In this document: in pieces, positions 3,153 to 63,812 of the stretch
How the letters are laid out: each line of letters opens with the position of its first letter
How positions within the stretch are numbered: the stretch's first letter is position 1
Origin: Rhodosorus marinus CCMP1338
Taxonomy: Eukaryota > Plantae > Rhodophyta
DNA: 64,000 nucleotides
NCBI GenBank assembly: GCA_029953675.1
Contig: JAMWBK010000001.1
Coordinates: 3,348,001 to 3,412,000 of the forward strand
Direction of reading: 5' to 3'
Notes under the pieces: model-generated
What the model was told of the DNA's origin: nothing
Databases searched by the model: none
Seen by the model: only the letters and a program-made list of their open reading frames with translations
Made by a program: the position numbers and the translations under genes

Positions 3153-5047
3153 CTCTCCCACTACCACCACTCTCCCCTCAAACACAGCAACGCCGAACCT
3201 TGCAATTGACTCCCCTCAGCTGTACAAATACATAAAAGTTCACCCGCTTATCAACAAACTCCGTGAAAACTCCCAGTTCCAATCTAACCCCACGTTAACA
3301 AGTACAAAACTCCTACCATCCTATTTCCCGTTCTTCTCCACACCTACGTCCCTCCCCAACACTGAGCCGAGCTAGCGCAAACGCATGTATCTCGACTCTC
3401 CTCACCTGGTCCCCAAAAACCCTTCCGGAACACCACACGAGCTCGGAACCCCCCACACCTCCCTCCCTCCTCACTTTCCTCTCGCCAAACCAACTTCAGA
3501 GCTCACACTCCGTCCCCAAGCCAATCCAACTTGGATGGATTCCCTTTGCTCCTCAACCACTACAAATCCGAAACGCTCGGTCTCAACCCCCCCCCCCCAA
3601 AGTTTCCTCAACTTCTTTCTATTCGGAAACGTGCAAGCCCTTAACCTTTCCAAAGCCGGGTCAGCTCAGATCATCTCACCTTCCCCGGAAAGGAAGCATT
3701 CCAAGTTTGGCACTCGCTCATCACCCTCTTCCCCAAATCCCCAAATCCAACACTTCATCACCTTCCACAAACTCCGAAACAACTTATGTACCCATTCATC
3801 CCAAAATTTCTAAATAAAACCATTATAGAACAGTTTAGAGTTCCAAATCCACATTTATATCTTAATTTAGACTTTGTGCGTCCTAAAATTCTCAAACTTA
3901 ACCAAATTTGGAAATCTTTATCTCTCTGCTCGGTTGAGAACACAAAAAAACTCCTTTTCAGCTGCTTTTGGCACTCGATGGGAAAACGAAATGAAAAGAC
4001 TTTAAGCAGATGTAGCGCGAGTGCTGCTTGCTTGGTTTGGAGGCTGTTTTTGCCGTGCGACTTCTAAGCGCCGACTCTGCTCCGCGTTTTTCGGGGTTCG
4101 TTTTTCGAGTTGTTGTATGAAGCTGCTCTGGCAACAGCGGGCGCCACGCTTCACGCTTCTATCCTCCCTCTTTATCCTCGCCTTGAGACCTCCGAGGTAG
4201 GTTGGTGAGGGATCTGGATGCCTGGAAAACAACGAACACTCCATAAGCAGGCTCTACGTTTTCCGCATGGAGAGGATAGTCTTCAGCAGACATGCACATG
4301 CCCTTTTGTGGAGGGAGAGTTTGCGTAGCTGGCCGGCGTCAAGTCAGTCGTTCTGTCGCCACACTACATGAATATCGCTTGGACACATGGAGAAGTGTCA
4401 GGAATTACTTTTCCACCAGTCCGAATGGAAATGCCCGGGAGGCTGGGAATACACCCAGTGGGGATCCTTTCAGAAGAGCTTCACACTCCTTGAGGAGCCA
4501 AATAGCACGCGTTCGTTTCCTTCCAATTGAATGGACTAGACACAGACAAACGAGGCTCTTAAGCCGGCTTCCCCTGAATAGTGTTTTCCGATATCTCTTT
4601 CACTGCCTACCAGCGATTACAATGACATGCGATCTCATCAAAGTAAACGTCTCCCTCTCTCGCGAGGACCTACACAGGACCACATTACAGCTTAAAATGC
4701 GCGAAACTTAACTATTGGTCAAAATCTGTGAAAATAGATTGGAAATTGGCAATATTTACAAGCGGGAATGATTTTAATTCGATACTAGTCCAGACGTAAA
4801 GGATATACTGTCTAATTAAATTCGTGAAGAAGCTTTTTCGGAAAAGATTATTTGTAGAATTTTAGCACTCGTACTTTCTTTGCATAATGATTGGTTTGGA
4901 TGAGATAGGTAGGGTTCGGAGAAACACAGGGTAGCGGTGGTTGGGGGTGATCCATGAAGGGGGGACAAAGGTGGGGGCGGAGGCCCTTGGGGTAAAGAGG
5001 GATCGAAAAGGTAAGGTTGGGACAGGGTATTTAATTAACAAAACCTG

Positions 5048-26895: not shown

Positions 26896-28315
26896 GTCTC
26901 AATGACTTTTTCCCACTATCAGGACAAAGAAACTGAGCTGGAGCTCTGAATGCGCGTGAATCAGTCTGATCATCACCAACACTGAATGTTCATATGCTGT
27001 AACGATCAAATAACACATGTTCAACTAGATAATCCTATAGAAACGCATGGCCGTATAGGACACGCGCAGAGCTGCACTGAACATCCAGAGTCTCTATCCT
27101 ACAAATTACAAGAGTTTCCGTTCTGGATGAGCGGGTACTCTACCCTCTCCACAACATGGGACGTCACGAACAATCAAATAATCGTCAACAAAATGTCATC
27201 TCTGGTCACATCCACCTCAGTAGGGCTGTCGGACACTGCCAGAAAGTGAGCGAAAAAGATCTCACTAGGCATCGGCTGCTCTCAGACGACTTTACTGAGC
27301 TGTTAGATCTGTACGTCAAGGTTAGACTCTACCTCAACGCTCGGCGCCCGGCAGGATAGTCAATGCCCCTCACCACTCCGAGCGAGGCAATGTGTCCCAA
27401 ACATTCCGCTGTCAAAAGCAACGTACTAACCTCCATTTCCCTCCCCCCACGCCGGAGCCAAAAAAACCTCACCGAACGGACACTACACACAAATCCATTC
27501 GAAATAATCGAGTTTCAACGATCATGCCAGAACCTTCCATTCCAGAACCCACCCCCTTACACTCCCCCAAAAAAAAGTACTCCGTCAGTAATATCCGTAT
27601 ACGGGGTGGGAAACAAGCATAGTTTTATTATCTGTAGTTTACCCCCCCTTAAAACATCATCTACAATTTCCCAGTTTTTCAATATCCAGAAGACATTTCA
27701 AATATTTCGTTTCAAAATCTAATCTTACCCCACCTCCCCATTCCGAATCCATCAAACTCCTTACCGCCACGAGCAATATTCCCTAAATTATCGAAGAAAA
27801 TTCGAATAGTTATGAACTACATTTGCTCGGTTACCTCCAGCACAACTGGAACAGTGGTATTTCTTGAATCGCATTTATTCTTCAATCATGACAAACCCTG
27901 AAGCATGTTTTCGGAAACGGATTTTGATGGTATTATGATTATTTTTGAAACAGGGTGAATTAGGTTGACGAGAAACTCCGTTGGGTGGTTGGAAGTTTCC
28001 ATTTGGTTAGGAAGGACGTGAAAGCTAATATGGGGTTTACTTTTTTGGAGGGAAGAGGGGGGGGGGGGAGGAGGTGGAGATAGGAAGCGTTGAGTTGGTG
28101 GAAAGGACTTTTCTCTATTGTTTTCTTTTTATATGTGCGGGAGGAGAACAGAAGTGAAGACGTAGCATGTTTTGGCGATGTGCATAAAAAGGAATCATCC
28201 ATTTTGAAGTTTAAAAGTTGCTTTGGGGGAGGGCGCGTTTTTACTAGTGAAGAGAGTTTCGAGAAGATAATGGGAGGGAATTTGTGATCATCGAGTGTCG
28301 AGCTTTTGTAAAATT

Positions 28316-34605: not shown

Positions 34606-36506
34606 ATGGCGGCCGCAAAGAAATGGGAAATGGTTGAGCAAAAGTTCTTGTCTGGGGACCCAGTATTTTTCTCGGGGGAGTTGGTCAAGGAATCCACTAG
34701 GATGAGACGACACAAGGTCAGGTATTTTCGTCTCGTAGATGGTGCACTTTACAATTACAGAAGGAAGGTATGCAAAGATGAAGCTCATCGTGCAGACGAA
34801 CTGGACAACTGCGTCCTCGTTTTCACATCGGATCTTTAAACGAACGATTACTGTCCGTATTCTAGGGTGAGACACCTACCAAAGTGTACAGTGTCATCGA
34901 TGGTAAGCTATCCTTGCCTGATGAGGATGGCATAGCACTCCACATGGCGGACGGGACAGAGCTCGTTCTCAGAAGTAAAGACTCGGAATATACACGAAGC
35001 TGGGCTGACGCGCTTATGAGGGCATCGAAGAGAGTAAGCTCAAACGGATCCATGCAGAGCCTGCCGCTTTGCTATGAGATCGAGAAAGATCCTCTCCTCG
35101 AACTCTGCAATTGGAATATAGCCGGCATAACTGATCACCTGTGTTTTTCTACTCAACTCCTTCCTGTGTTTTTGATACAGAAAATCGGCCGTTTCTATGG
35201 TATTCATGGAATCATTGGGGCCGGTGCGTTTGCCGAGGTGCGATTGGCTTACGTAAAGAATACTGGAGAGCAAGTTGCTGTGAAGATCATGCGCAAGAAC
35301 AAGAATGATCAAGAGCTCATGACTGCTGTAAACTGTGAGCTCAAGTTCGTCAGTAGGAACATTGTGCATAAAAACATTGTTGCCACGTAAGTGCAGTCCT
35401 CTACAATGAGCGGCGACCGGTTCTTCCACAGTGCACGTTCTAACTGCTCTCTGTTGCTCCGTTCCTCGTCCTCAATAGATATGACGTCATCAATACAAGA
35501 GAAATTCTGTTTATAGTCATGGAATACATGAAGGGAGGTATGCTTTATGACGTATTGGCAGAGGAGAAAATGCTCTCCGAAAAGGTGAGATCTCTAATAG
35601 AGAAGGTTGCAGTCAATCTAACTAATAAAGGCGGACGGTTTGTAGAAATGTTCGTACGGGGCCTGAAACTCACTCCTTGTAACGCTGTGGAACCTTCTCA
35701 GAAAGCAAGCATCGTCATGAAGTCCCTGCTGGAAGCACTGGGCTATTTGCATGAGAATGGCATCGTGCACCGTGATGTGAAGCCGGAGAACGTGCTTTGC
35801 TCAGGACGAGAATGGCCTCTTACGATCAAGCTTGCTGATTTTGGTCTCGCGGATGTGATCATGGAGGACACCTTTGGGGACAAGACAGCACGGGGAATGT
35901 ACGGGACACCTTTCTTCGTTGCTCCTGAGGTTATCAGAGGCGAGGCTTACGGGCCCGCGGTGGACATATGGTCGTCCGGAGTGCTCCTCTACAACATGCT
36001 GTCAGGTATGAGAAAGACGCGAATATATGCGTATTGCAATTCGCAAGCATCTCACTGGAAATGGATCACTTTGTACAGGTCAACTGCCCTTTGAAGGAGG
36101 AAGTTTAGCAGAAGTTTTGAAACGAGTTAAGGCTGGTCACGTAGAGTTTCCAGAGAAGAAATGGGGGTCAATTTCAGATGAGGCGAAGAACTTCATCCGG
36201 GGGCTGCTTCGTTTCCATCCCGGAGAAAGACTCTCTGCGAAGCAGGCACTAGCAGATCCTTGGTTCACGTTGGCGCAGACACGGAAGGAGAGGATCCTTG
36301 GACACGACATGTCACAGATGATGACGAAGGAAGCGAAAGGAATGAGGAGCTCGGTCGCTATAGAGGACATCGAAGGGCTGCTTCGGGACGCTGTCGCAAG
36401 CCAGAAGGAGAAGAGCGATTCCGGGCCTCGACTTTTTGGGTTCAAGATTTACCGACAGAACTCGGAGAGCAGCAAAGTATCTCGAAGCGCAGCGACAGAA
36501 ACGTAG
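34606..36506 (+). CDS. PH-domain Ser/Thr protein kinase (CAMK-like), multi-exon
   Basis: PH segment FSGELVKESTRMRRHKVRYFRLVDGALYNY ... WADALMRAS. Kinase motifs GAGAFAEV, VAVK, HRDVKPEN, DFG, GTPFFVAPE and VDIWSSG are all intact. Confidence 0.93.
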
Positions 36507-54483: not shown

Positions 54484-54715
54484 GGGGTCTTCAGCTTCTC
54501 AGGCTCTGGGGTTCTCAGTTTCTTCAGGTTCCCAGTGCGTCTAGCTCCTCGGGGTCTTCAGGATCTCAGGATCTCAGGACATCTAGCTCTTCGGGGTCTT
54601 CAGGATCTCAGGATCTCAGGATCTCAGGACATCTAGCTCTTCGCGGTCTTCAGATTCAGGTTCTCAGGCTCTCAGATTCCCCGCCTCTCAGACTCCATAG
54701 GCTCTCCTAGGTCAT
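54484..54715. repeat. nested minisatellite: 26-nt core plus variable number of 8-nt TCAGGATC units
   Basis: tctagctc starts recur at about 54541, 54583 and 54633 (periods 42 and 50). CTCAG occurs ten times in 54498-54691 and the flanks are degenerate. Confidence 0.9.
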
Positions 54716-56659: not shown

Positions 56660-58899
56660 TTAGAAGTTGTCTCCTGCCGTAATTTTGATTTCTGCGAAAG
56701 GTTCTGCTTGGTGAATCTGGACGAAGCTAAGTTATGGTACGAGGAGCGTGTGTATTTAGCTGTACACCGCCGATAGTGTGACGCGCATGCAGATTTAGTG
56801 TTCAGACTCACTTGTTTCCGGCTAGAACGAGTACTTGATAGAACATTCTAGCCGTTGTTCCCCTGGAGCAGCTCTCGGTTATCTCGTCAAACTGTGGGGG
56901 TGAAAGAAGTCCATGAGTCCGAAGCGGGTGAGATTTCAGAGCGCGAACTGGACTGTTTCTGTCTTCAGCTCGAGCTTAGTTTTGTTATCGTGCTTGCTTT
57001 TGTTCTTACAGTGCACGTGAAGTCTTTATTCTCCGTCATCTCGTCGCCCTTTGTTCTCCTGAGGAGCTTCAGCATCTTGAACCTTTTCGAAGAATGGGAG
57101 CGGCGGGTTGGGGGTGGGGGCTAAGCTGCGCTAGTACATGACCGAAAAGCGTTGACAGATGTATGAACCTACGATTTCACGTCAAGCTTTTCAAATGGCC
57201 CCGGTCCCTCCTGAAGGTCAATAGGATCTGGAAGTTCCTCGTCAGGGAGAATGGACTGATGCGGGCCAGTAATATCTTGCTGTCCGTGTTCTTGACTGCC
57301 AAGTCCTGGTTCAGCTGAATACATCAACGGCGTCTCTTGCCCACCGGTCCCCAAGGATGTCGGTCGCATCGAGGATCCTGGAGTTCAGAACGCAGAGGAA
57401 CAAACAGGGTTTAGACTGCTCCCCAAGTGCTCTTTAGTTGGGCAAGCTCGTACCCTCTATGGACTGGAAATCTGCAGCCGGCGAATCTATTGTCAACCGC
57501 CGGGCCTGAGCGAACTCTGCCCGGTCCATTTCGGTGATCTGTCGAGAAAGGGATCTTCAGTAAGCTGATGCAGCTACTCGAGCTATCGTAGAATTTGGCT
57601 TCAATGTTGACAATACCCTGCGGTGGGGTCATACCTCCTCAAATTGAGCATCCCTCGCTCTTTCGAGCTCCACACTGGAGCTGTGGTGACTTCCGTCGCG
57701 GGTCGTATGTGGCTGTGCGGGAGGAGGCATCGCGCCCTGAACGAGTCTCTGAAACTTGGTTTCCAGCATTTCCTGCAGCTTCGGCCGCATCCGATACAAT
57801 TCTTGATTTCGTACGTAGAGAGTGGGGTGATTCCACAACTTCAAAGCTCCGTTTTCGAACGAGGGCTGTTCTCTGCAGACAATCAACCTCAACCCAGTTC
57901 AGAACACGCCACTGCCTGCAGAAAACGTGGGAAACTACTTCGCAGTTCGAACCTCGTCTTCCTTCCTACAATATCGCTGGTGTTTTCGAGGCACGCTCGT
58001 CTGAACTCGCGGCCGAGCTCAGTCTCGGTATCCACCCGACTCTCATCGGATAGACGCCGCTTCCTCGTCGATCTTGAGCTCTGCGGCGATACAGTTTGGG
58101 CTCGGGGCTCGTCAGTCCTGGATTGAACTCTCCCATCTTGTGCAGTGGCGGTGGGTTGAATATCGGCTTGCAAGGGCACAGTGGGGTGGATGGACCCCTC
58201 TGGATCCCCTTGCGGAAGCAAAAGCTGTTGTTCCCCGACTGGAGGATCTCCGAAGAATAGAGACTCAGAACCGAGTGAAGGCTCAATGTAGCCTTCCGTG
58301 GGTGGCAACAGTCTCCTTAAAACATCTCCAGGCTCTGTCGAGATATCCATTAAGTCGTCATGATGGCTTATTCCTGGAGACAGCGTGATGTCCATGACAT
58401 CCGCTTGAAATGATCTCGCAGGGGATATTCCAAGCAAAGAAGGGCCATCAGCGTTGTGGCTTGGTGTTCCTTGCAGAAGACTCTCTGCAGCAGTTGCATG
58501 CTGATAGGAAAGACGCAGGTTCAGGTCTAAATTGAGTTGATTTTGCTGGTCCATGTTTACAACGGTAATGCTCTCGAATCTGGCGTTCGCATCGACGAGT
58601 GGCAAATCAATTTCTGCTGCCGATTTGGAGTTGAACATTTGAATCGTGGACATCAAATCCGTCACGTCGGACAAGATAATAGTACACTTCTTCACGAAAA
58701 CCCTGCACACTCCCACCATGAGCTGAGCGGATAGCCTCAGGGCCAATGGAGCACGTGGCTGAACAATGTGAGTGCATATGTTCTCGATAGGAGCTTTCAG
58801 AGCGAACCCTTTCTTGATCTTGTCCTTTCCAAGCGTCGCGGCCGTCCAGATCTCAGCAAGCGGGCCCCTTCTCGTCAAGATTTCGCTCGAGTAGAACAT
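56660..58899 (-). CDS. REC8: Rad21/Rec8 kleisin, REC8 (meiotic) type, multi-exon
   Basis: N-terminal MFYSSEILTRRGPLAEIWTAATLG..PLALRLSAQLMVGVCRVF; AATL rather than Rad21-type AAHW. Central RKRRLSDESRVDTETEL..LENTSDIV. C-terminal winged helix SCSRGTTARMFYQVLVLAGN|KIHQAEPFAEIKITAG ends TAA at 56660-56662. Confidence 0.88.
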
Positions 58900-59134
58900 A
58901 CTTCAAAGCTCTAAGAAAGAAAGCCTAGATGGGTGGAACTGCCGAGACTTCTCAACAGACCCAACTCTTAATCTCAGCAACAAGGAGACTCTCGGGCTTC
59001 AAAAACGACGTGTCTGTAATGACAACCACCTGAAAAAATGAATACAAATGGCTCTCGATGTTTTCTATCTTACGATTCTTCCTATCCGACGTCTCGCTTC
59101 CCTCCCCCCCTCCCCGCCCTCTAAACAAGCCGAG

Positions 59135-59340
59135 CCTTATATAGTCCATACCAGTAAGTCTCACGTCATGACGTAAAACTCCCAAGGAGAACTATAAGTC
59201 AAAAACAAGTCTCACGTCATGACGAGAAACTCTCTCCGGATTTAAAAATCCTCTCTGGACGTAAGACTCTTAAACTGGACTTTCGGTTCAGAGTCTCACA
59301 TCATGACGTGCAACACCGTCCAGAGTCTCGCGTCATTCGA
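59135..59340 (-). promoter_or_regulatory. putative REC8 promoter: TATA box plus clustered RAGTCTCACGTCATGACG motifs
   Basis: CTATATAAGG on minus strand (59135-59144). Motif copies at 59156-73, 59207-24, 59291-308 and 59323-40, with an inverted partial copy at 59258-70. Confidence 0.65.
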
Positions 59341-60023
59341 AAAGCTCGCCCTGCTGACACCTTCACAAAAATACTCAAATACGATTTGAGTGGTTAAATG
59401 ATTTTCCATGTTAATATAATTGGAATACTATAAGACTATATATTTTGATTGGATCCCTTCGGAATAAGAATGACCTTAATTCGATAAATAAGGATCATCT
59501 TTTTTGTTTATTTTATAACATTGTTATATGAAGGCGTCACTTAAGTGGGAAGTCTCACGGCGATCGAGATAGGGAGCGGCAGCTACTCAATGGAGTGGTC
59601 TAGCTCTTGACTTGAGCCATTGGAGGCGATCTGGAACATTTCAAGACGTTTGTAACAAGCCAATAGTGTCAGCTGCTGTTGATATTGCGTGGTTTCCTTA
59701 TGTGCTGGAAAGAAATTCTTTTGAAGTACGGGTTTTGAGGTTTTTTGGTTTTTGACCAAAAGCAGGAGTGAAAAGCGATCCGCAAAGGTCGACATGGTCC
59801 CGAGAGTGTCTTAGTGTCTTCAACAAAGTGCAGCATATTACGTTTATGGATAATATAATATTCACTGTCTCGGAGCTCTCCCCTATGAAAAAGGATCGGT
59901 TCTAATGAGTGAGGTGGGTCGTGCGCGCCCTTGGTTCGACGGCATGCGTTAACACATCAGTGCTATTCAGAACACGCAACCCGGTTTTTTCTTTCCTAGG
60001 AGTTCCAGAACATGTGCGGTACT

Positions 60024-60833: not shown

Positions 60834-63675
60834 TTTTCTTTCAGAATTGCAGCCCTAGTAAACAACTTTTTACAACCGGAGGTGACGGTATGCCGTATAG
60901 AGCGACGAGACTGAGTACTTACCAAGAGCCGCTTCCCTTCCCCTACCCTAATTCTCCCAGATTTCCCTCGCAGGTAGCGTAGCCCTGCTTACTCGTGCCA
61001 CCGAATGGAAATGCAAAATTGACTGAAGTAGAGTGCCCTACCCCTATACCACTTCAGCGGGACGAACATTATATTCATAATAAGAAAAATATTGACAGCT
61101 TATGCGAGGTATTTACCCCTCATGAGTTTGCCACCAGCAACGCAATATTGATTGATGTTGAACTACCATTTACACTCGTAAAGGACGCCTCGTCATGGAA
61201 CGAAGATTGTTTTTAGAGATATTTAAATTCACATCTGCGCCTTTCGACGGGTGAATAACATGAAATTTCGTCCCAGTTGCGTCTGCGAAATGAAGGTTAA
61301 GAATACTGAGGCAATCTCATCGAAAGGGGCATCACTCGGGTACAGCCAATCGACCTCTTGCTCTACGTATCTACTTCGTCCAAGACGTAATTTTATTGGT
61401 CCGAAGGAGATACACAGTATCTTAATTGGATCACACACGACGTTGAGATATTTTACGAGAAAACAATCGTATCTTAATATGCATTGAAAATTCTTTGGGT
61501 AGGGAAAATATTTGGAAAAAAATCCTGGGTGGGGGGACAGATGTCGGACGGTAACACAAAAACGTGGAGAGGAATTGGGAAGGTGGTATTGCTGAGGTTG
61601 ATGGCGGTGAACAAGTCCAACGTGTATACCGATGAAACGTCGTCTGGCAACGTAGGGGGCGTAGAGCTAGCCTGGTTGAAGGCGGCCGATAGGAGGAACC
61701 AGTTGGATGACAAGTAACAGGACACTACTAGAGTCTTCTACCTGTAAGGCAGTGCACAGTGCTGGTGTGCGCAACCGCACCTTTCGGTGGAAGGCGGTTA
61801 GTCGCCTCGACTTCCCAACTCGGTTTGCATAGCCTGGCGTTAAGTGAAACGTCACTGGGCGTGAAGACACGCCCAGTTCGGGATATAGGAAACTCTCTCG
61901 GGTAGAGGACCTGGAGCTTTCCAAGAGGGGACGTAGACAGTAGATGAGTTCCGTATTTGCTTCGTTGACTTGTTTAGACAGAAAACTTGCTGAGCGACTG
62001 TAGGGCTCAGAGCTCCTTTGGCTAATCCGAAACAGACACGTCCTAGGCAGCATTCGAGGCGGATGACTCTGGTTGGGCACCACCAAGGAGCTCTTTCAGT
62101 AACGCGTTTATGACTGCACATTTGACTTCTGCGTATTGAATGGGCAGGCTCAATTCAACATCAGGGTTTGAGGCTACCAAGTCCGCTGCCTACTGTGCCC
62201 CGCCGATAATCTTATTCGTAAGTGGCTGTTGCAAACTACCATAGGCTCGACTTTGCTCGAAATCATAGTGCTTGTCAGGATCCTGGTTGGAACTCCGGCG
62301 ACCACTGAATCGCGCACTACTATCTATTGCTTCGACGCTTCCCGTTCTGATCAACAGTTACGACCAATTCCGCGCTACTATATTGGCCAAAGTTCGGCTT
62401 CAAGAACGAAGTTTTCACAGTTGTTTGCTCCTCACGGACACGGTTGTCCTAAACGGACGTTCCCAAGCACCGAGCCGAATTCGTTTGGTCTGCCTAGCCA
62501 TACGAATCTAAAACGTCGTGACGTGACTTAGAGAGCCAGCAGCCCTCTCAACGGTTGCACTACCTGGCAATGTTGGAACCCCACGCTTACGTTCATTTGC
62601 TACGCATCCTCCAAGCACCAATCAAACTTGAGAGTGAGCGATCAAAACGAGAACCGGTCCGTACCATCTTTTCCTCAGATCGTTAGACGATCAACGACTC
62701 CATTCCACTTACCACAAGCGGGTCTGCTACTTCTCACGCAGTCGGTGGCATGGGTAGTCAGGAAATCTCGGAGAATTAGGGTGGGGGAGGGGAAGCGGCT
62801 CTTGGTACGTACTCAGCCAAAATTTGCCACATACCTGGACATCCACACCAGAACGCTAGAGCGCATCATGTGCAAAGCGTAAGCTACCGTTGATCCTCCG
62901 AGTAGGGAGTTTCAACCTATCTCTGATCAGGGAATGCACATTAACGGACTCCCAACAAAGCCTGCCGTCAGTTACCCTCCCCCCCCGCAAACTAAGTCTA
63001 GCCCAATTTTCTAAATCACCCTCCTAGGACTTGACATCATTTGATACATTCCAATAAACATAATTTTCACACTCCTTATCGATCGAACAACTTCTCCATA
63101 ACCCCCTGATTACATTTATTTTGGAGAGAGGATGGACTTCTCCTTTGCGCCATACTCAGAATCGGGGTGGTAAACACCATTCCATCGTTAAACCGATCAA
63201 CGACAATTCTGATGAAAGTTCTTCATTTGTTTCGTAAAAAAGCTAAATATATCGTCCCAAATAACCTTCTCTGTCGTCTTAACCAATGCATATCATCGTA
63301 TATACAGATACATTACAACAGAAACCCACCCCCCCGAAAAGGGGGGGGTAGCCTGTTTCACCAGTGCAAGCGCATCCCTGGCCAACAAAAAACTTCTAAA
63401 TTTTAATATTCCGCTGGCTTATTGGCCTGACTTATGGACCACGAGCGGAAGGTTTTTTTTGTCCCCATTAGCATTCGAGACAAATGGAATTTTGGCATAC
63501 GAAAATATGGTGAAAATTGTATGATAATATTAGTAAATAATATTTAGTGCTATATACAAGGGGTAGGGCGTAGTTTGGTGTAAGCGGTTTGCGAGTGTTT
63601 GGGCTGATTTTCTTGATGGGGGAAAAAGATGGGAGTTTTTGAGGAGGATGCGGAGGGTAGAAGTGAGGATTGCGA

Positions 63676-63812
63676 GAGATTGGGGTTGAGGAGGTGGGGA
63701 GGTTGGGAGATGGGGTTGAGGGGGATGGGGAGGTTGGGAGATGGGGTTGAGGGGGATGGGGAGGCTGGGAGATGGGGTTGAGGTGGTGGGGAGGTTGGAA
63801 GATGGGGCTGAG
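63676..63812. repeat. G-rich 31-nt tandem repeat, about 4.5 copies
   Basis: Unit ggggaggttgggagatggggttgagggggat; gagatggggttgag-like starts at 63676, 63707, 63738, 63769 and 63799. Confidence 0.9.

Follow-up and report, generated by a model that had tools for sequence, protein, structure and literature searches.

The spacer upstream of a REC8-type kleisin gene of the red alga Rhodosorus marinus holds an array in which a 24-nt palindromic element is present in two full copies, one near-full copy and two half copies within a span of 180 bp; we regard this array, with moderate confidence, as a homotypic bZIP-type promoter module of that gene. The array, whose function we infer from its sequence, resembles a common type of promoter switch built from sites of a previously undescribed architecture. 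The sequence features listed in the original prediction are thereby confirmed, and its interpretation is borne out in part.

The window analysed here is a stretch of 64,000 nucleotides that is identical to the corresponding part of contig JAMWBK010000001.1 in assembly GCA_029953675.1, where the record position equals 3348000 plus the window position used throughout. The original prediction, made from the letters of this window, had taken the host to be an alga, and rightly so, as Rhodosorus marinus (Rhodophyta) is a unicellular red alga of the Stylonematophyceae (PMC10250338). The kleisin gene, NDN08_005835, runs from its ATG at 58899 to 56660 on the minus strand and encodes an alpha-kleisin of 564 aa; its seven exons, rebuilt from the deposited protein, are separated by six introns with GT..AG borders. 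Its upstream neighbour on the same strand is a gene for a 269-aa HAD-family hydrolase (60833-60024, minus), at a distance of 1124 bp, and the array lies in the spacer between the two, 690-870 nt past the HAD stop codon. An AATAAA at 59512-59507 (in minus-strand order) stands between that stop codon and the array, and the gene and ORF annotation of the locus includes no plus-strand gene facing the array. Elsewhere in the surrounding DNA, a 56-nt inverted repeat with 93% complementarity (60911-60966 and 62761-62816) encloses 1.8 kb just upstream of the HAD gene and may represent the terminal inverted repeats of a DNA element, while tandem repeats occur at 54540-54675 (period 42-50 nt) and at 63676-63812 (period 31 nt), the latter within a proline-rich minus-strand ORF.

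Every coordinate in the motif list of the original prediction was recovered in the sequence. The 18-mer AAGTCTCACGTCATGACG occurs exactly at 59156 and at 59207, such that copies 1 and 2 are identical at 18 of 18 positions. Copy 1 (59156..59180, A-AGTCTCACGTCATGACGTAAAACT) is a 24-nt imperfect palindrome centred 25 nt upstream of a TATA box, and its inner part is the perfect 12-bp palindrome ACGTCATGACGT at 59163-59174. Copy 2 (59207..59231, A-AGTCTCACGTCATGACGAGAAACT) is found 51 bp from copy 1 and is followed by an inverted half-copy on the minus strand (59258..59270, GACGTAAGACTCT, which reads AGAGTCTTACGTC on the other strand). Copy 3 (59291..59315, G-AGTCTCACATCATGACGTGCAACA), 84 bp from copy 2, starts with the variant GAGTCTCACATCATGACG at 59291 and carries one mismatch in a 17-mer, and copy 4, 32 bp further on, consists of the left half only (59323..59336, plus strand, GAGTCTCGCGTCAT). 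An isolated plus-strand fragment, AAGTCTCACG at 59550..59559, is a weak match without the CGTCAT core and may have arisen by chance. Four ATGACGT heptamers fall within the array, two on the minus strand (59163 and 59214) and two on the plus strand (59168 and 59303).

This concentration of sites is specific to the array. When up to three mismatches are allowed, the 17-mer AGTCTCACGTCATGACG has five matches in the 64 kb against 0.15 expected, a count reached in none of 100 shuffles, and all five fall inside the array (59157-59308). Neither this 17-mer, nor the 13-nt half-site AGTYTYNCGTCAT, nor CGTCATGACG was found outside the array, either in the 64-kb window or in the 6.8 kb that follow it. 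The heptamer ATGACGT is not enriched outside the array, where seven occurrences compare with about 5.8 expected for the whole window, and the Poisson probability of four heptamers in 147 bp, corrected for window count, is about 1e-6. The original prediction had allowed that the motif might turn out to be a dispersed repeat; across the combined 70.8 kb there is no other copy, and the flanks of the copies are unrelated to one another. In public metagenome and transcriptome contigs, the exact 17-mer had 15 matches, which were single, unrelated and attributable to chance, and none came from a Rhodosorus transcriptome. A pair of ATGACGT sites at 35481-35553 was considered as a second array and rejected, as it lies inside a kinase-like coding exon. 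This pair comprises a perfect 10-bp CRE/M26 palindrome, the only ATGACGTCAT of the window (35481-35490), and a further ATGACGT at 35547-35553 in the same protein-kinase-like exon, and it is probably due to chance or driven by the coding sequence.

A full copy of the element is a 24-nt imperfect palindrome, AGTYTYNCGTCATGACGNRARACT, and is longer than the 18-nt unit described in the original prediction. Its halves are AGTCTCACGTCAT and ATGACGTAAAACT in copy 1 and AGTCTCACGTCAT and ATGACGAGAAACT in copy 2, with 11 of 13 positions mirrored in both, and the half-site reads ATGACGTGAGACT in the orientation of the gene. The core ACGTCATGACGT has CATG as its centre of symmetry and contains two inverted ACGT cores 8 bp apart (59163-59166 and 59171-59174 in copy 1). 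The two strands of the core read TGACGTG and TGACGTA, which we take to be a hybrid C/G-box and a hybrid C/A-box in plant bZIP terms. The AGTCTC flank had been proposed as the site of a second factor, a suggestion weakened by our finding that it is mirrored on the far side of the core (AGTYTY ... RARACT), which is what a single extended site with this symmetry would show; AGTCTC is thus the outer part of a symmetric half-site and not clearly the site of a second factor. This symmetry argues for one putative extended dimeric site over a separate second factor, although a co-factor may flank the core on both sides. Our literature search returned no description of such a 24-nt palindrome, in which the centre is CATG and the outer arms are conserved.

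The array occupies the position expected of a promoter element for the kleisin gene. A TATATAA read from the sequence at 59143-59137 on the minus strand, the strand of the kleisin gene, lies 12 nt from copy 1, which bears out the proposed placement of the array just upstream of a minus-strand TATA box facing this gene. The array as a whole extends from 12 to 193 nt upstream of this TATATAA, or from about -45 to -230 relative to a TATA-directed start. Transcript contigs of the gene were available from a related Rhodosorus strain (contigs L001-L003, JGI sample 3300017118; the protein is also found under MMETSP) and share 82% DNA identity with the window. They represent sense transcripts, as their downstream splice sites are GT..AG on the minus strand, and they start at about 59068, that is 75 nt downstream of the TATA box and 88 nt downstream of the array, although assembled 5′ ends may be truncated. 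This leaves a minimal 5′ UTR of 169 nt to the ATG in window coordinates (58900..59068, minus), compared to 176 nt in the sister strain itself. Since the transcript start lies downstream of both the TATA box and the array, the array is in promoter position, and a start site upstream of the array, which the original prediction had named as evidence against itself, is not what these assembled 5′ ends indicate. A G-rich tract (59120-59100, minus) is located 3′ of TATATAA on the gene strand; on the plus strand, these 21 nt between the TATA box and the transcript start are almost pure C, and short C-rich matches to the run occur at 27437, 34444, 41757 and 50429.

In the mechanism that we propose, the array would form the upstream activating part of the REC8-type alpha-kleisin promoter. 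It is well established that bZIP factors recognise TGACGT and ACGT cores, and the core ACGTCATGACGT can be read as two ATGACGT(G/A) half-CRE or hybrid C-box sites set back to back, for which ACGT-core bZIP dimers would be the likeliest readers. Each element might accommodate two dimers or, alternatively, one dimer with extended flank contacts reaching AGTYTY; with ACGT cores merely 8 bp apart, two bZIP dimers might not fit. Multiple phased sites would then lead to cooperative, switch-like activation. The centre-to-centre spacings of 51, 84 and 32 bp correspond to 4.9, 8.0 and 3.0 helical turns, and these three values are only weakly suggestive of copies phased at near-whole helical turns.

A different reading of the same symmetry, which we consider doubtful, is that the array is an inverted-repeat hairpin element, either a MITE-like relic or a locus forming a hairpin RNA or a DNA cruciform, in which the ACGT cores are incidental. 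Copies 1 and 2 can indeed pair in a stem of about 29 bp (25 bp in the motif and four outer pairs), for which the folding energy over 91 nt is -41.7 kcal/mol (z = -6.6), and copy 3 can pair with the inverted half-copy, with z = -5.4 for the 196-nt stretch. In addition, of the four positions at which the palindromes of copies 1 and 2 are imperfect, three would become G-U wobbles on a minus-strand RNA, and the only matches returned by Rfam in the array stretch are miRNA-precursor-like. However, any repeated palindromic binding site gives such folds, and since the hairpin follows automatically from the symmetry of the sites, the z-score is not independent evidence. The Rfam matches, which the palindromes explain, also fall far short of the respective gathering scores (28.8 bits where 200 are required, and 28.5 where 84 are), and a miRNA or other hairpin RNA precursor was rejected on these scores and on the fact that the sole known transcripts, L001-L003, start downstream of the array and its predicted hairpins. 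For a mobile element, one would have to accept a family with no other copy in 70.8 kb and an insertion with neither terminal repeats nor a target-site duplication around the array.

Less likely still are three further readings: neutral duplication, a role at the HAD gene as boundary or terminator, and a hotspot of the M26 type. Under the first, which seems improbable to us, local duplications of 51-nt and 32-nt units in an intergenic spacer would have produced a functionless array as a neutral outcome. The copies do fall into two flank sub-types, with copies 1 and 2 starting with AAGTCTC and copies 3 and 4 sharing the 5′ flank GTYCAGAGTCTC, and this pattern suggests that the copies may have a duplication history. 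A duplication young enough to preserve 18/18 identity should nevertheless have left the rest of the unit matching, whereas in copies 1 and 2 the remaining 33 nt of each 51-nt unit are no more alike than shuffled sequence (p = 0.22). Complete core identity next to a random remainder thus favours constraint over recent tandem duplication, and similarity that is confined to the element fits a constrained site, which supports the promoter-module reading. Neutral duplication also leaves unexplained both the internal palindromy of each copy and the position of the array adjacent to a TATA box.

It is very unlikely that the array, instead of activating the kleisin gene, serves the HAD gene or the boundary between the two genes, by terminating or pausing transcription or as an insulator. 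Its location between two same-strand genes and downstream of the AATAAA at 59512-59507 would be compatible with such a role, as would the contigs of the sister strain that read through the next gene boundary. However, the sister-strain kleisin contigs stop short of the array, so that read-through from the HAD gene is not seen, and the proximity of the TATA box fits activation better. Moreover, we know of no use of such hairpins in Pol II termination.

The module is, as far as its sequence tells, probably of a familiar kind, namely a homotypic cluster of ACGT-core sites near a TATA box. The nearest algal precedent is provided by diatom CO2/cAMP-responsive elements (CCREs), reportedly the subject of Ohno et al. 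2012. As in CCREs, several TGACGT-type motifs are found on both strands and in inverted arrangement within a few hundred bp of one algal start codon, here with TGACGT in both orientations between 257 and 411 nt upstream of the ATG, and by analogy the presumed reader of the array would also be a bZIP. Unlike the CCREs, which belong to a stramenopile and to carbon-concentrating targets, the R. marinus array belongs to a red alga and a kleisin gene, and its unit is a palindrome of a fixed 24 nt, with CATG at the centre and conserved AGTYTY flanks. In Phaeodactylum, CCREs are inverted TGACGT/C repeats that are bound by PtbZIP11 in the PtCA1, PtCA2 and PtBST1 promoters (PMC11142338).

Two further groups of elements resemble the array in part. 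Similar to mammalian CRE-TATA promoters, the array has ACGT-core sites 12-193 nt upstream of a TATA box, but it differs from them in half-site composition, copy number and organism. In mammals, CRE activity is highest when the site lies no more than about 200 bp upstream of a TATA box. Plant as-1/ocs elements consist of paired TGACG motifs bound by TGA bZIP dimers, for instance TGACGTAAGGGATGACGCA in CaMV 35S, and TGA factors are a streptophyte family. The R. marinus element likewise includes two ACGT-type cores, and the strings TGACGTAA and TGACGTAAG occur in the array, at 59169-59176 and, with GACGTAAG, at 59258-59265. The spacing rule of as-1 is however not followed, with cores that are inverted and 8 bp apart here but direct and 12 bp apart in as-1.

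The original prediction had likened the array to the M26/CRE site of fission yeast. The S. pombe rec8 gene is itself under MCB/Rep1-type early-meiotic control, not M26. What stands of the comparison is the ATGACGT heptamer, with its TGACGT core, present in four exact occurrences; what does not stand is the full CRE palindrome TGACGTCA centred on ACGT, which is absent from the array, where the centre is CATG and the heptamers overlap tail to tail (ACGTCATGACGT). The likeness in terms of a link to sexual differentiation and meiosis is conceptual only. In fission yeast, M26/CRE sites (ATGACGT, extended ATGACGTCAT) are bound by Atf1-Pcr1 and make recombination hotspots (PMC2396409, PMC9775316). 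Although this precedent and the four heptamers could suggest that the array acts chiefly in meiotic recombination, as an M26-like hotspot at which a bZIP opens chromatin, and not as a switch of transcription, such a role appears highly improbable for a mechanism known only in fungi and an alga without a described sexual cycle, and it would be compatible with the promoter reading rather than exclusive of it.

The original prediction had named the kleisin gene REC8. Pfam resolves NDN08_005835 only to the Rad21/Rec8 family, with PF04824 and PF04825 both recorded on the 564-aa product and an E-value of 4.9e-29 for Rad21_Rec8_N (PF04825). Its relatives in the PDB are all RAD21/Scc1 (S. pombe Rad21, 2e-18; human RAD21, 5e-15), with no REC8 chain among the matches. 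When 1.84 billion representatives were scanned in full with HMMER and the best 20 matches were identified by name, the nearest named relatives among these 20 were a Porphyridium purpureum "rad21-like protein 1" (P0004), a Galdieria protein and plant SYN1-type proteins. The best named land-plant matches were "sister chromatid cohesion 1 protein 1" of Amborella and Ceratopteris, a name that denotes SYN1/DIF1, the plant REC8 (PMC9957857). For the second kleisin of Porphyridium (P0014), the best matches were "mitotic cohesin", SCC1 proteins 3 and 4, and fungal rad21.

Neighbour joining of 38 labelled kleisins (200 bootstraps), a crude distance method in which long-branch attraction is possible, separated NDN08_005835 and the Purpureofilum, Porphyridium P0004 and Galdieria proteins, together with S. 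cryophilus Rec8, whale REC8 and plant SYN1, from the RAD21-types in 136 of 200 replicates. P0014, a Timspurckia protein and one JGI sequence formed a group on the RAD21 side (191/200), and red-algal kleisins were monophyletic in none of the 200 replicates. There is thus moderate support, from best matches and tree, for a candidate REC8/SYN1-type rather than RAD21 protein: membership of the Rad21/Rec8 kleisin family is supported, and the choice of REC8 within it moderately so. A separate RAD21-type paralog beside the REC8-like one is seen in Porphyridium purpureum (P0014 vs P0004). No second R. marinus kleisin was retrieved with a 3-sequence profile or with the Porphyridium RAD21-like query, both of which were limited by a word pre-filter.

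In the promoter of the Porphyridium REC8-like kleisin gene (contig L020) we found no array, a point against the promoter-module reading, but a single CATGACGTGCA at 4569-4579, an 11-mer identical to window positions 59302-59312, for which we estimate a chance probability of about 0.05. The same promoter also contains GCGCGAAAAACGCGT at about 4866-4880, which resembles E2F/MCB cell-cycle sites. The promoter of a RAD21-type protein on a Logan contig (L021) held nothing motif-like. On another Logan contig (L024, positions 1-352, SRR24495967), which encodes the REC8-clade kleisin P0008, three sense-strand CGTCAT occur in the 352 nt upstream of the ORF, where by our own estimate about 0.09 would be expected on that strand; a relationship of this trio to the array is suggestive only.

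The kleisin gene appears from comparison with the sister strain to be functional, conserved and under purifying selection. Once six retained introns were removed in silico, the sister-strain contig yielded an intact ORF of 563 aa that is 87.6% identical to NDN08_005835. DNA identity between the strains was 85-96% in exons, 60-79% in introns and 71% in the 5′ UTR, and dN/dS was 0.22 for the gene as a whole but 0.04 for the N-terminal domain, at a dS of 0.27. Exact look-ups with the 336-aa unspliced ORF and with the HAD protein returned no same-strain transcriptome or second assembly.

The culture transcripts of the sister strain, L001-L003, keep all six kleisin introns (window 57952-56727), while the next gene downstream is properly spliced at GT..AG introns in the same contigs (55994-55905 and 55740-55660). 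The Purpureofilum ORF likewise stops at the end of exon 1. Contigs L001-L003 run past the kleisin gene through a 650-nt spacer into this downstream gene (185 aa; 56001-54838, minus), for which no Pfam match was obtained and in which they differ by alternative splicing, as L002 drops two further introns at 55563-55478 and 55426-55336. Intron retention in the kleisin gene could reflect an assembly in which pre-mRNA or DNA reads were fused to the mRNA of the neighbour. It could also reflect regulated splicing, with the kleisin message kept unspliced during vegetative growth, as is the case for some meiotic genes of yeasts. For meiosis-specific expression of the gene, the retained introns are no more than an indirect hint.

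The link of the array to meiosis is one that we infer. In its strongest and, in our view, unlikely form, the array would be the induction switch of a cryptic meiotic programme, in which a dedicated bZIP reads the 24-nt palindrome and activates the REC8-type kleisin gene, with transcripts otherwise unspliced in vegetative cells, and in which the same element marks the rest of the meiotic regulon. Our literature search found nothing on how REC8 is regulated in red algae, nor on cis-elements for bZIP factors in their promoters. To our knowledge, almost nothing is known of cis-regulation in red algae, and no sexual cycle has been described for Rhodosorus. If the motif is a repeat, or a bZIP site of the general stress or cAMP type, it would be an ordinary promoter feature. 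The combination of an intact REC8-type kleisin gene under purifying selection and a distinctive, easily searchable promoter element provides a concrete handle: if the same 24-mer marks other genes of the meiotic toolkit, it would define a meiotic regulon and point to both the factor that reads it and the conditions that induce sex in this alga.
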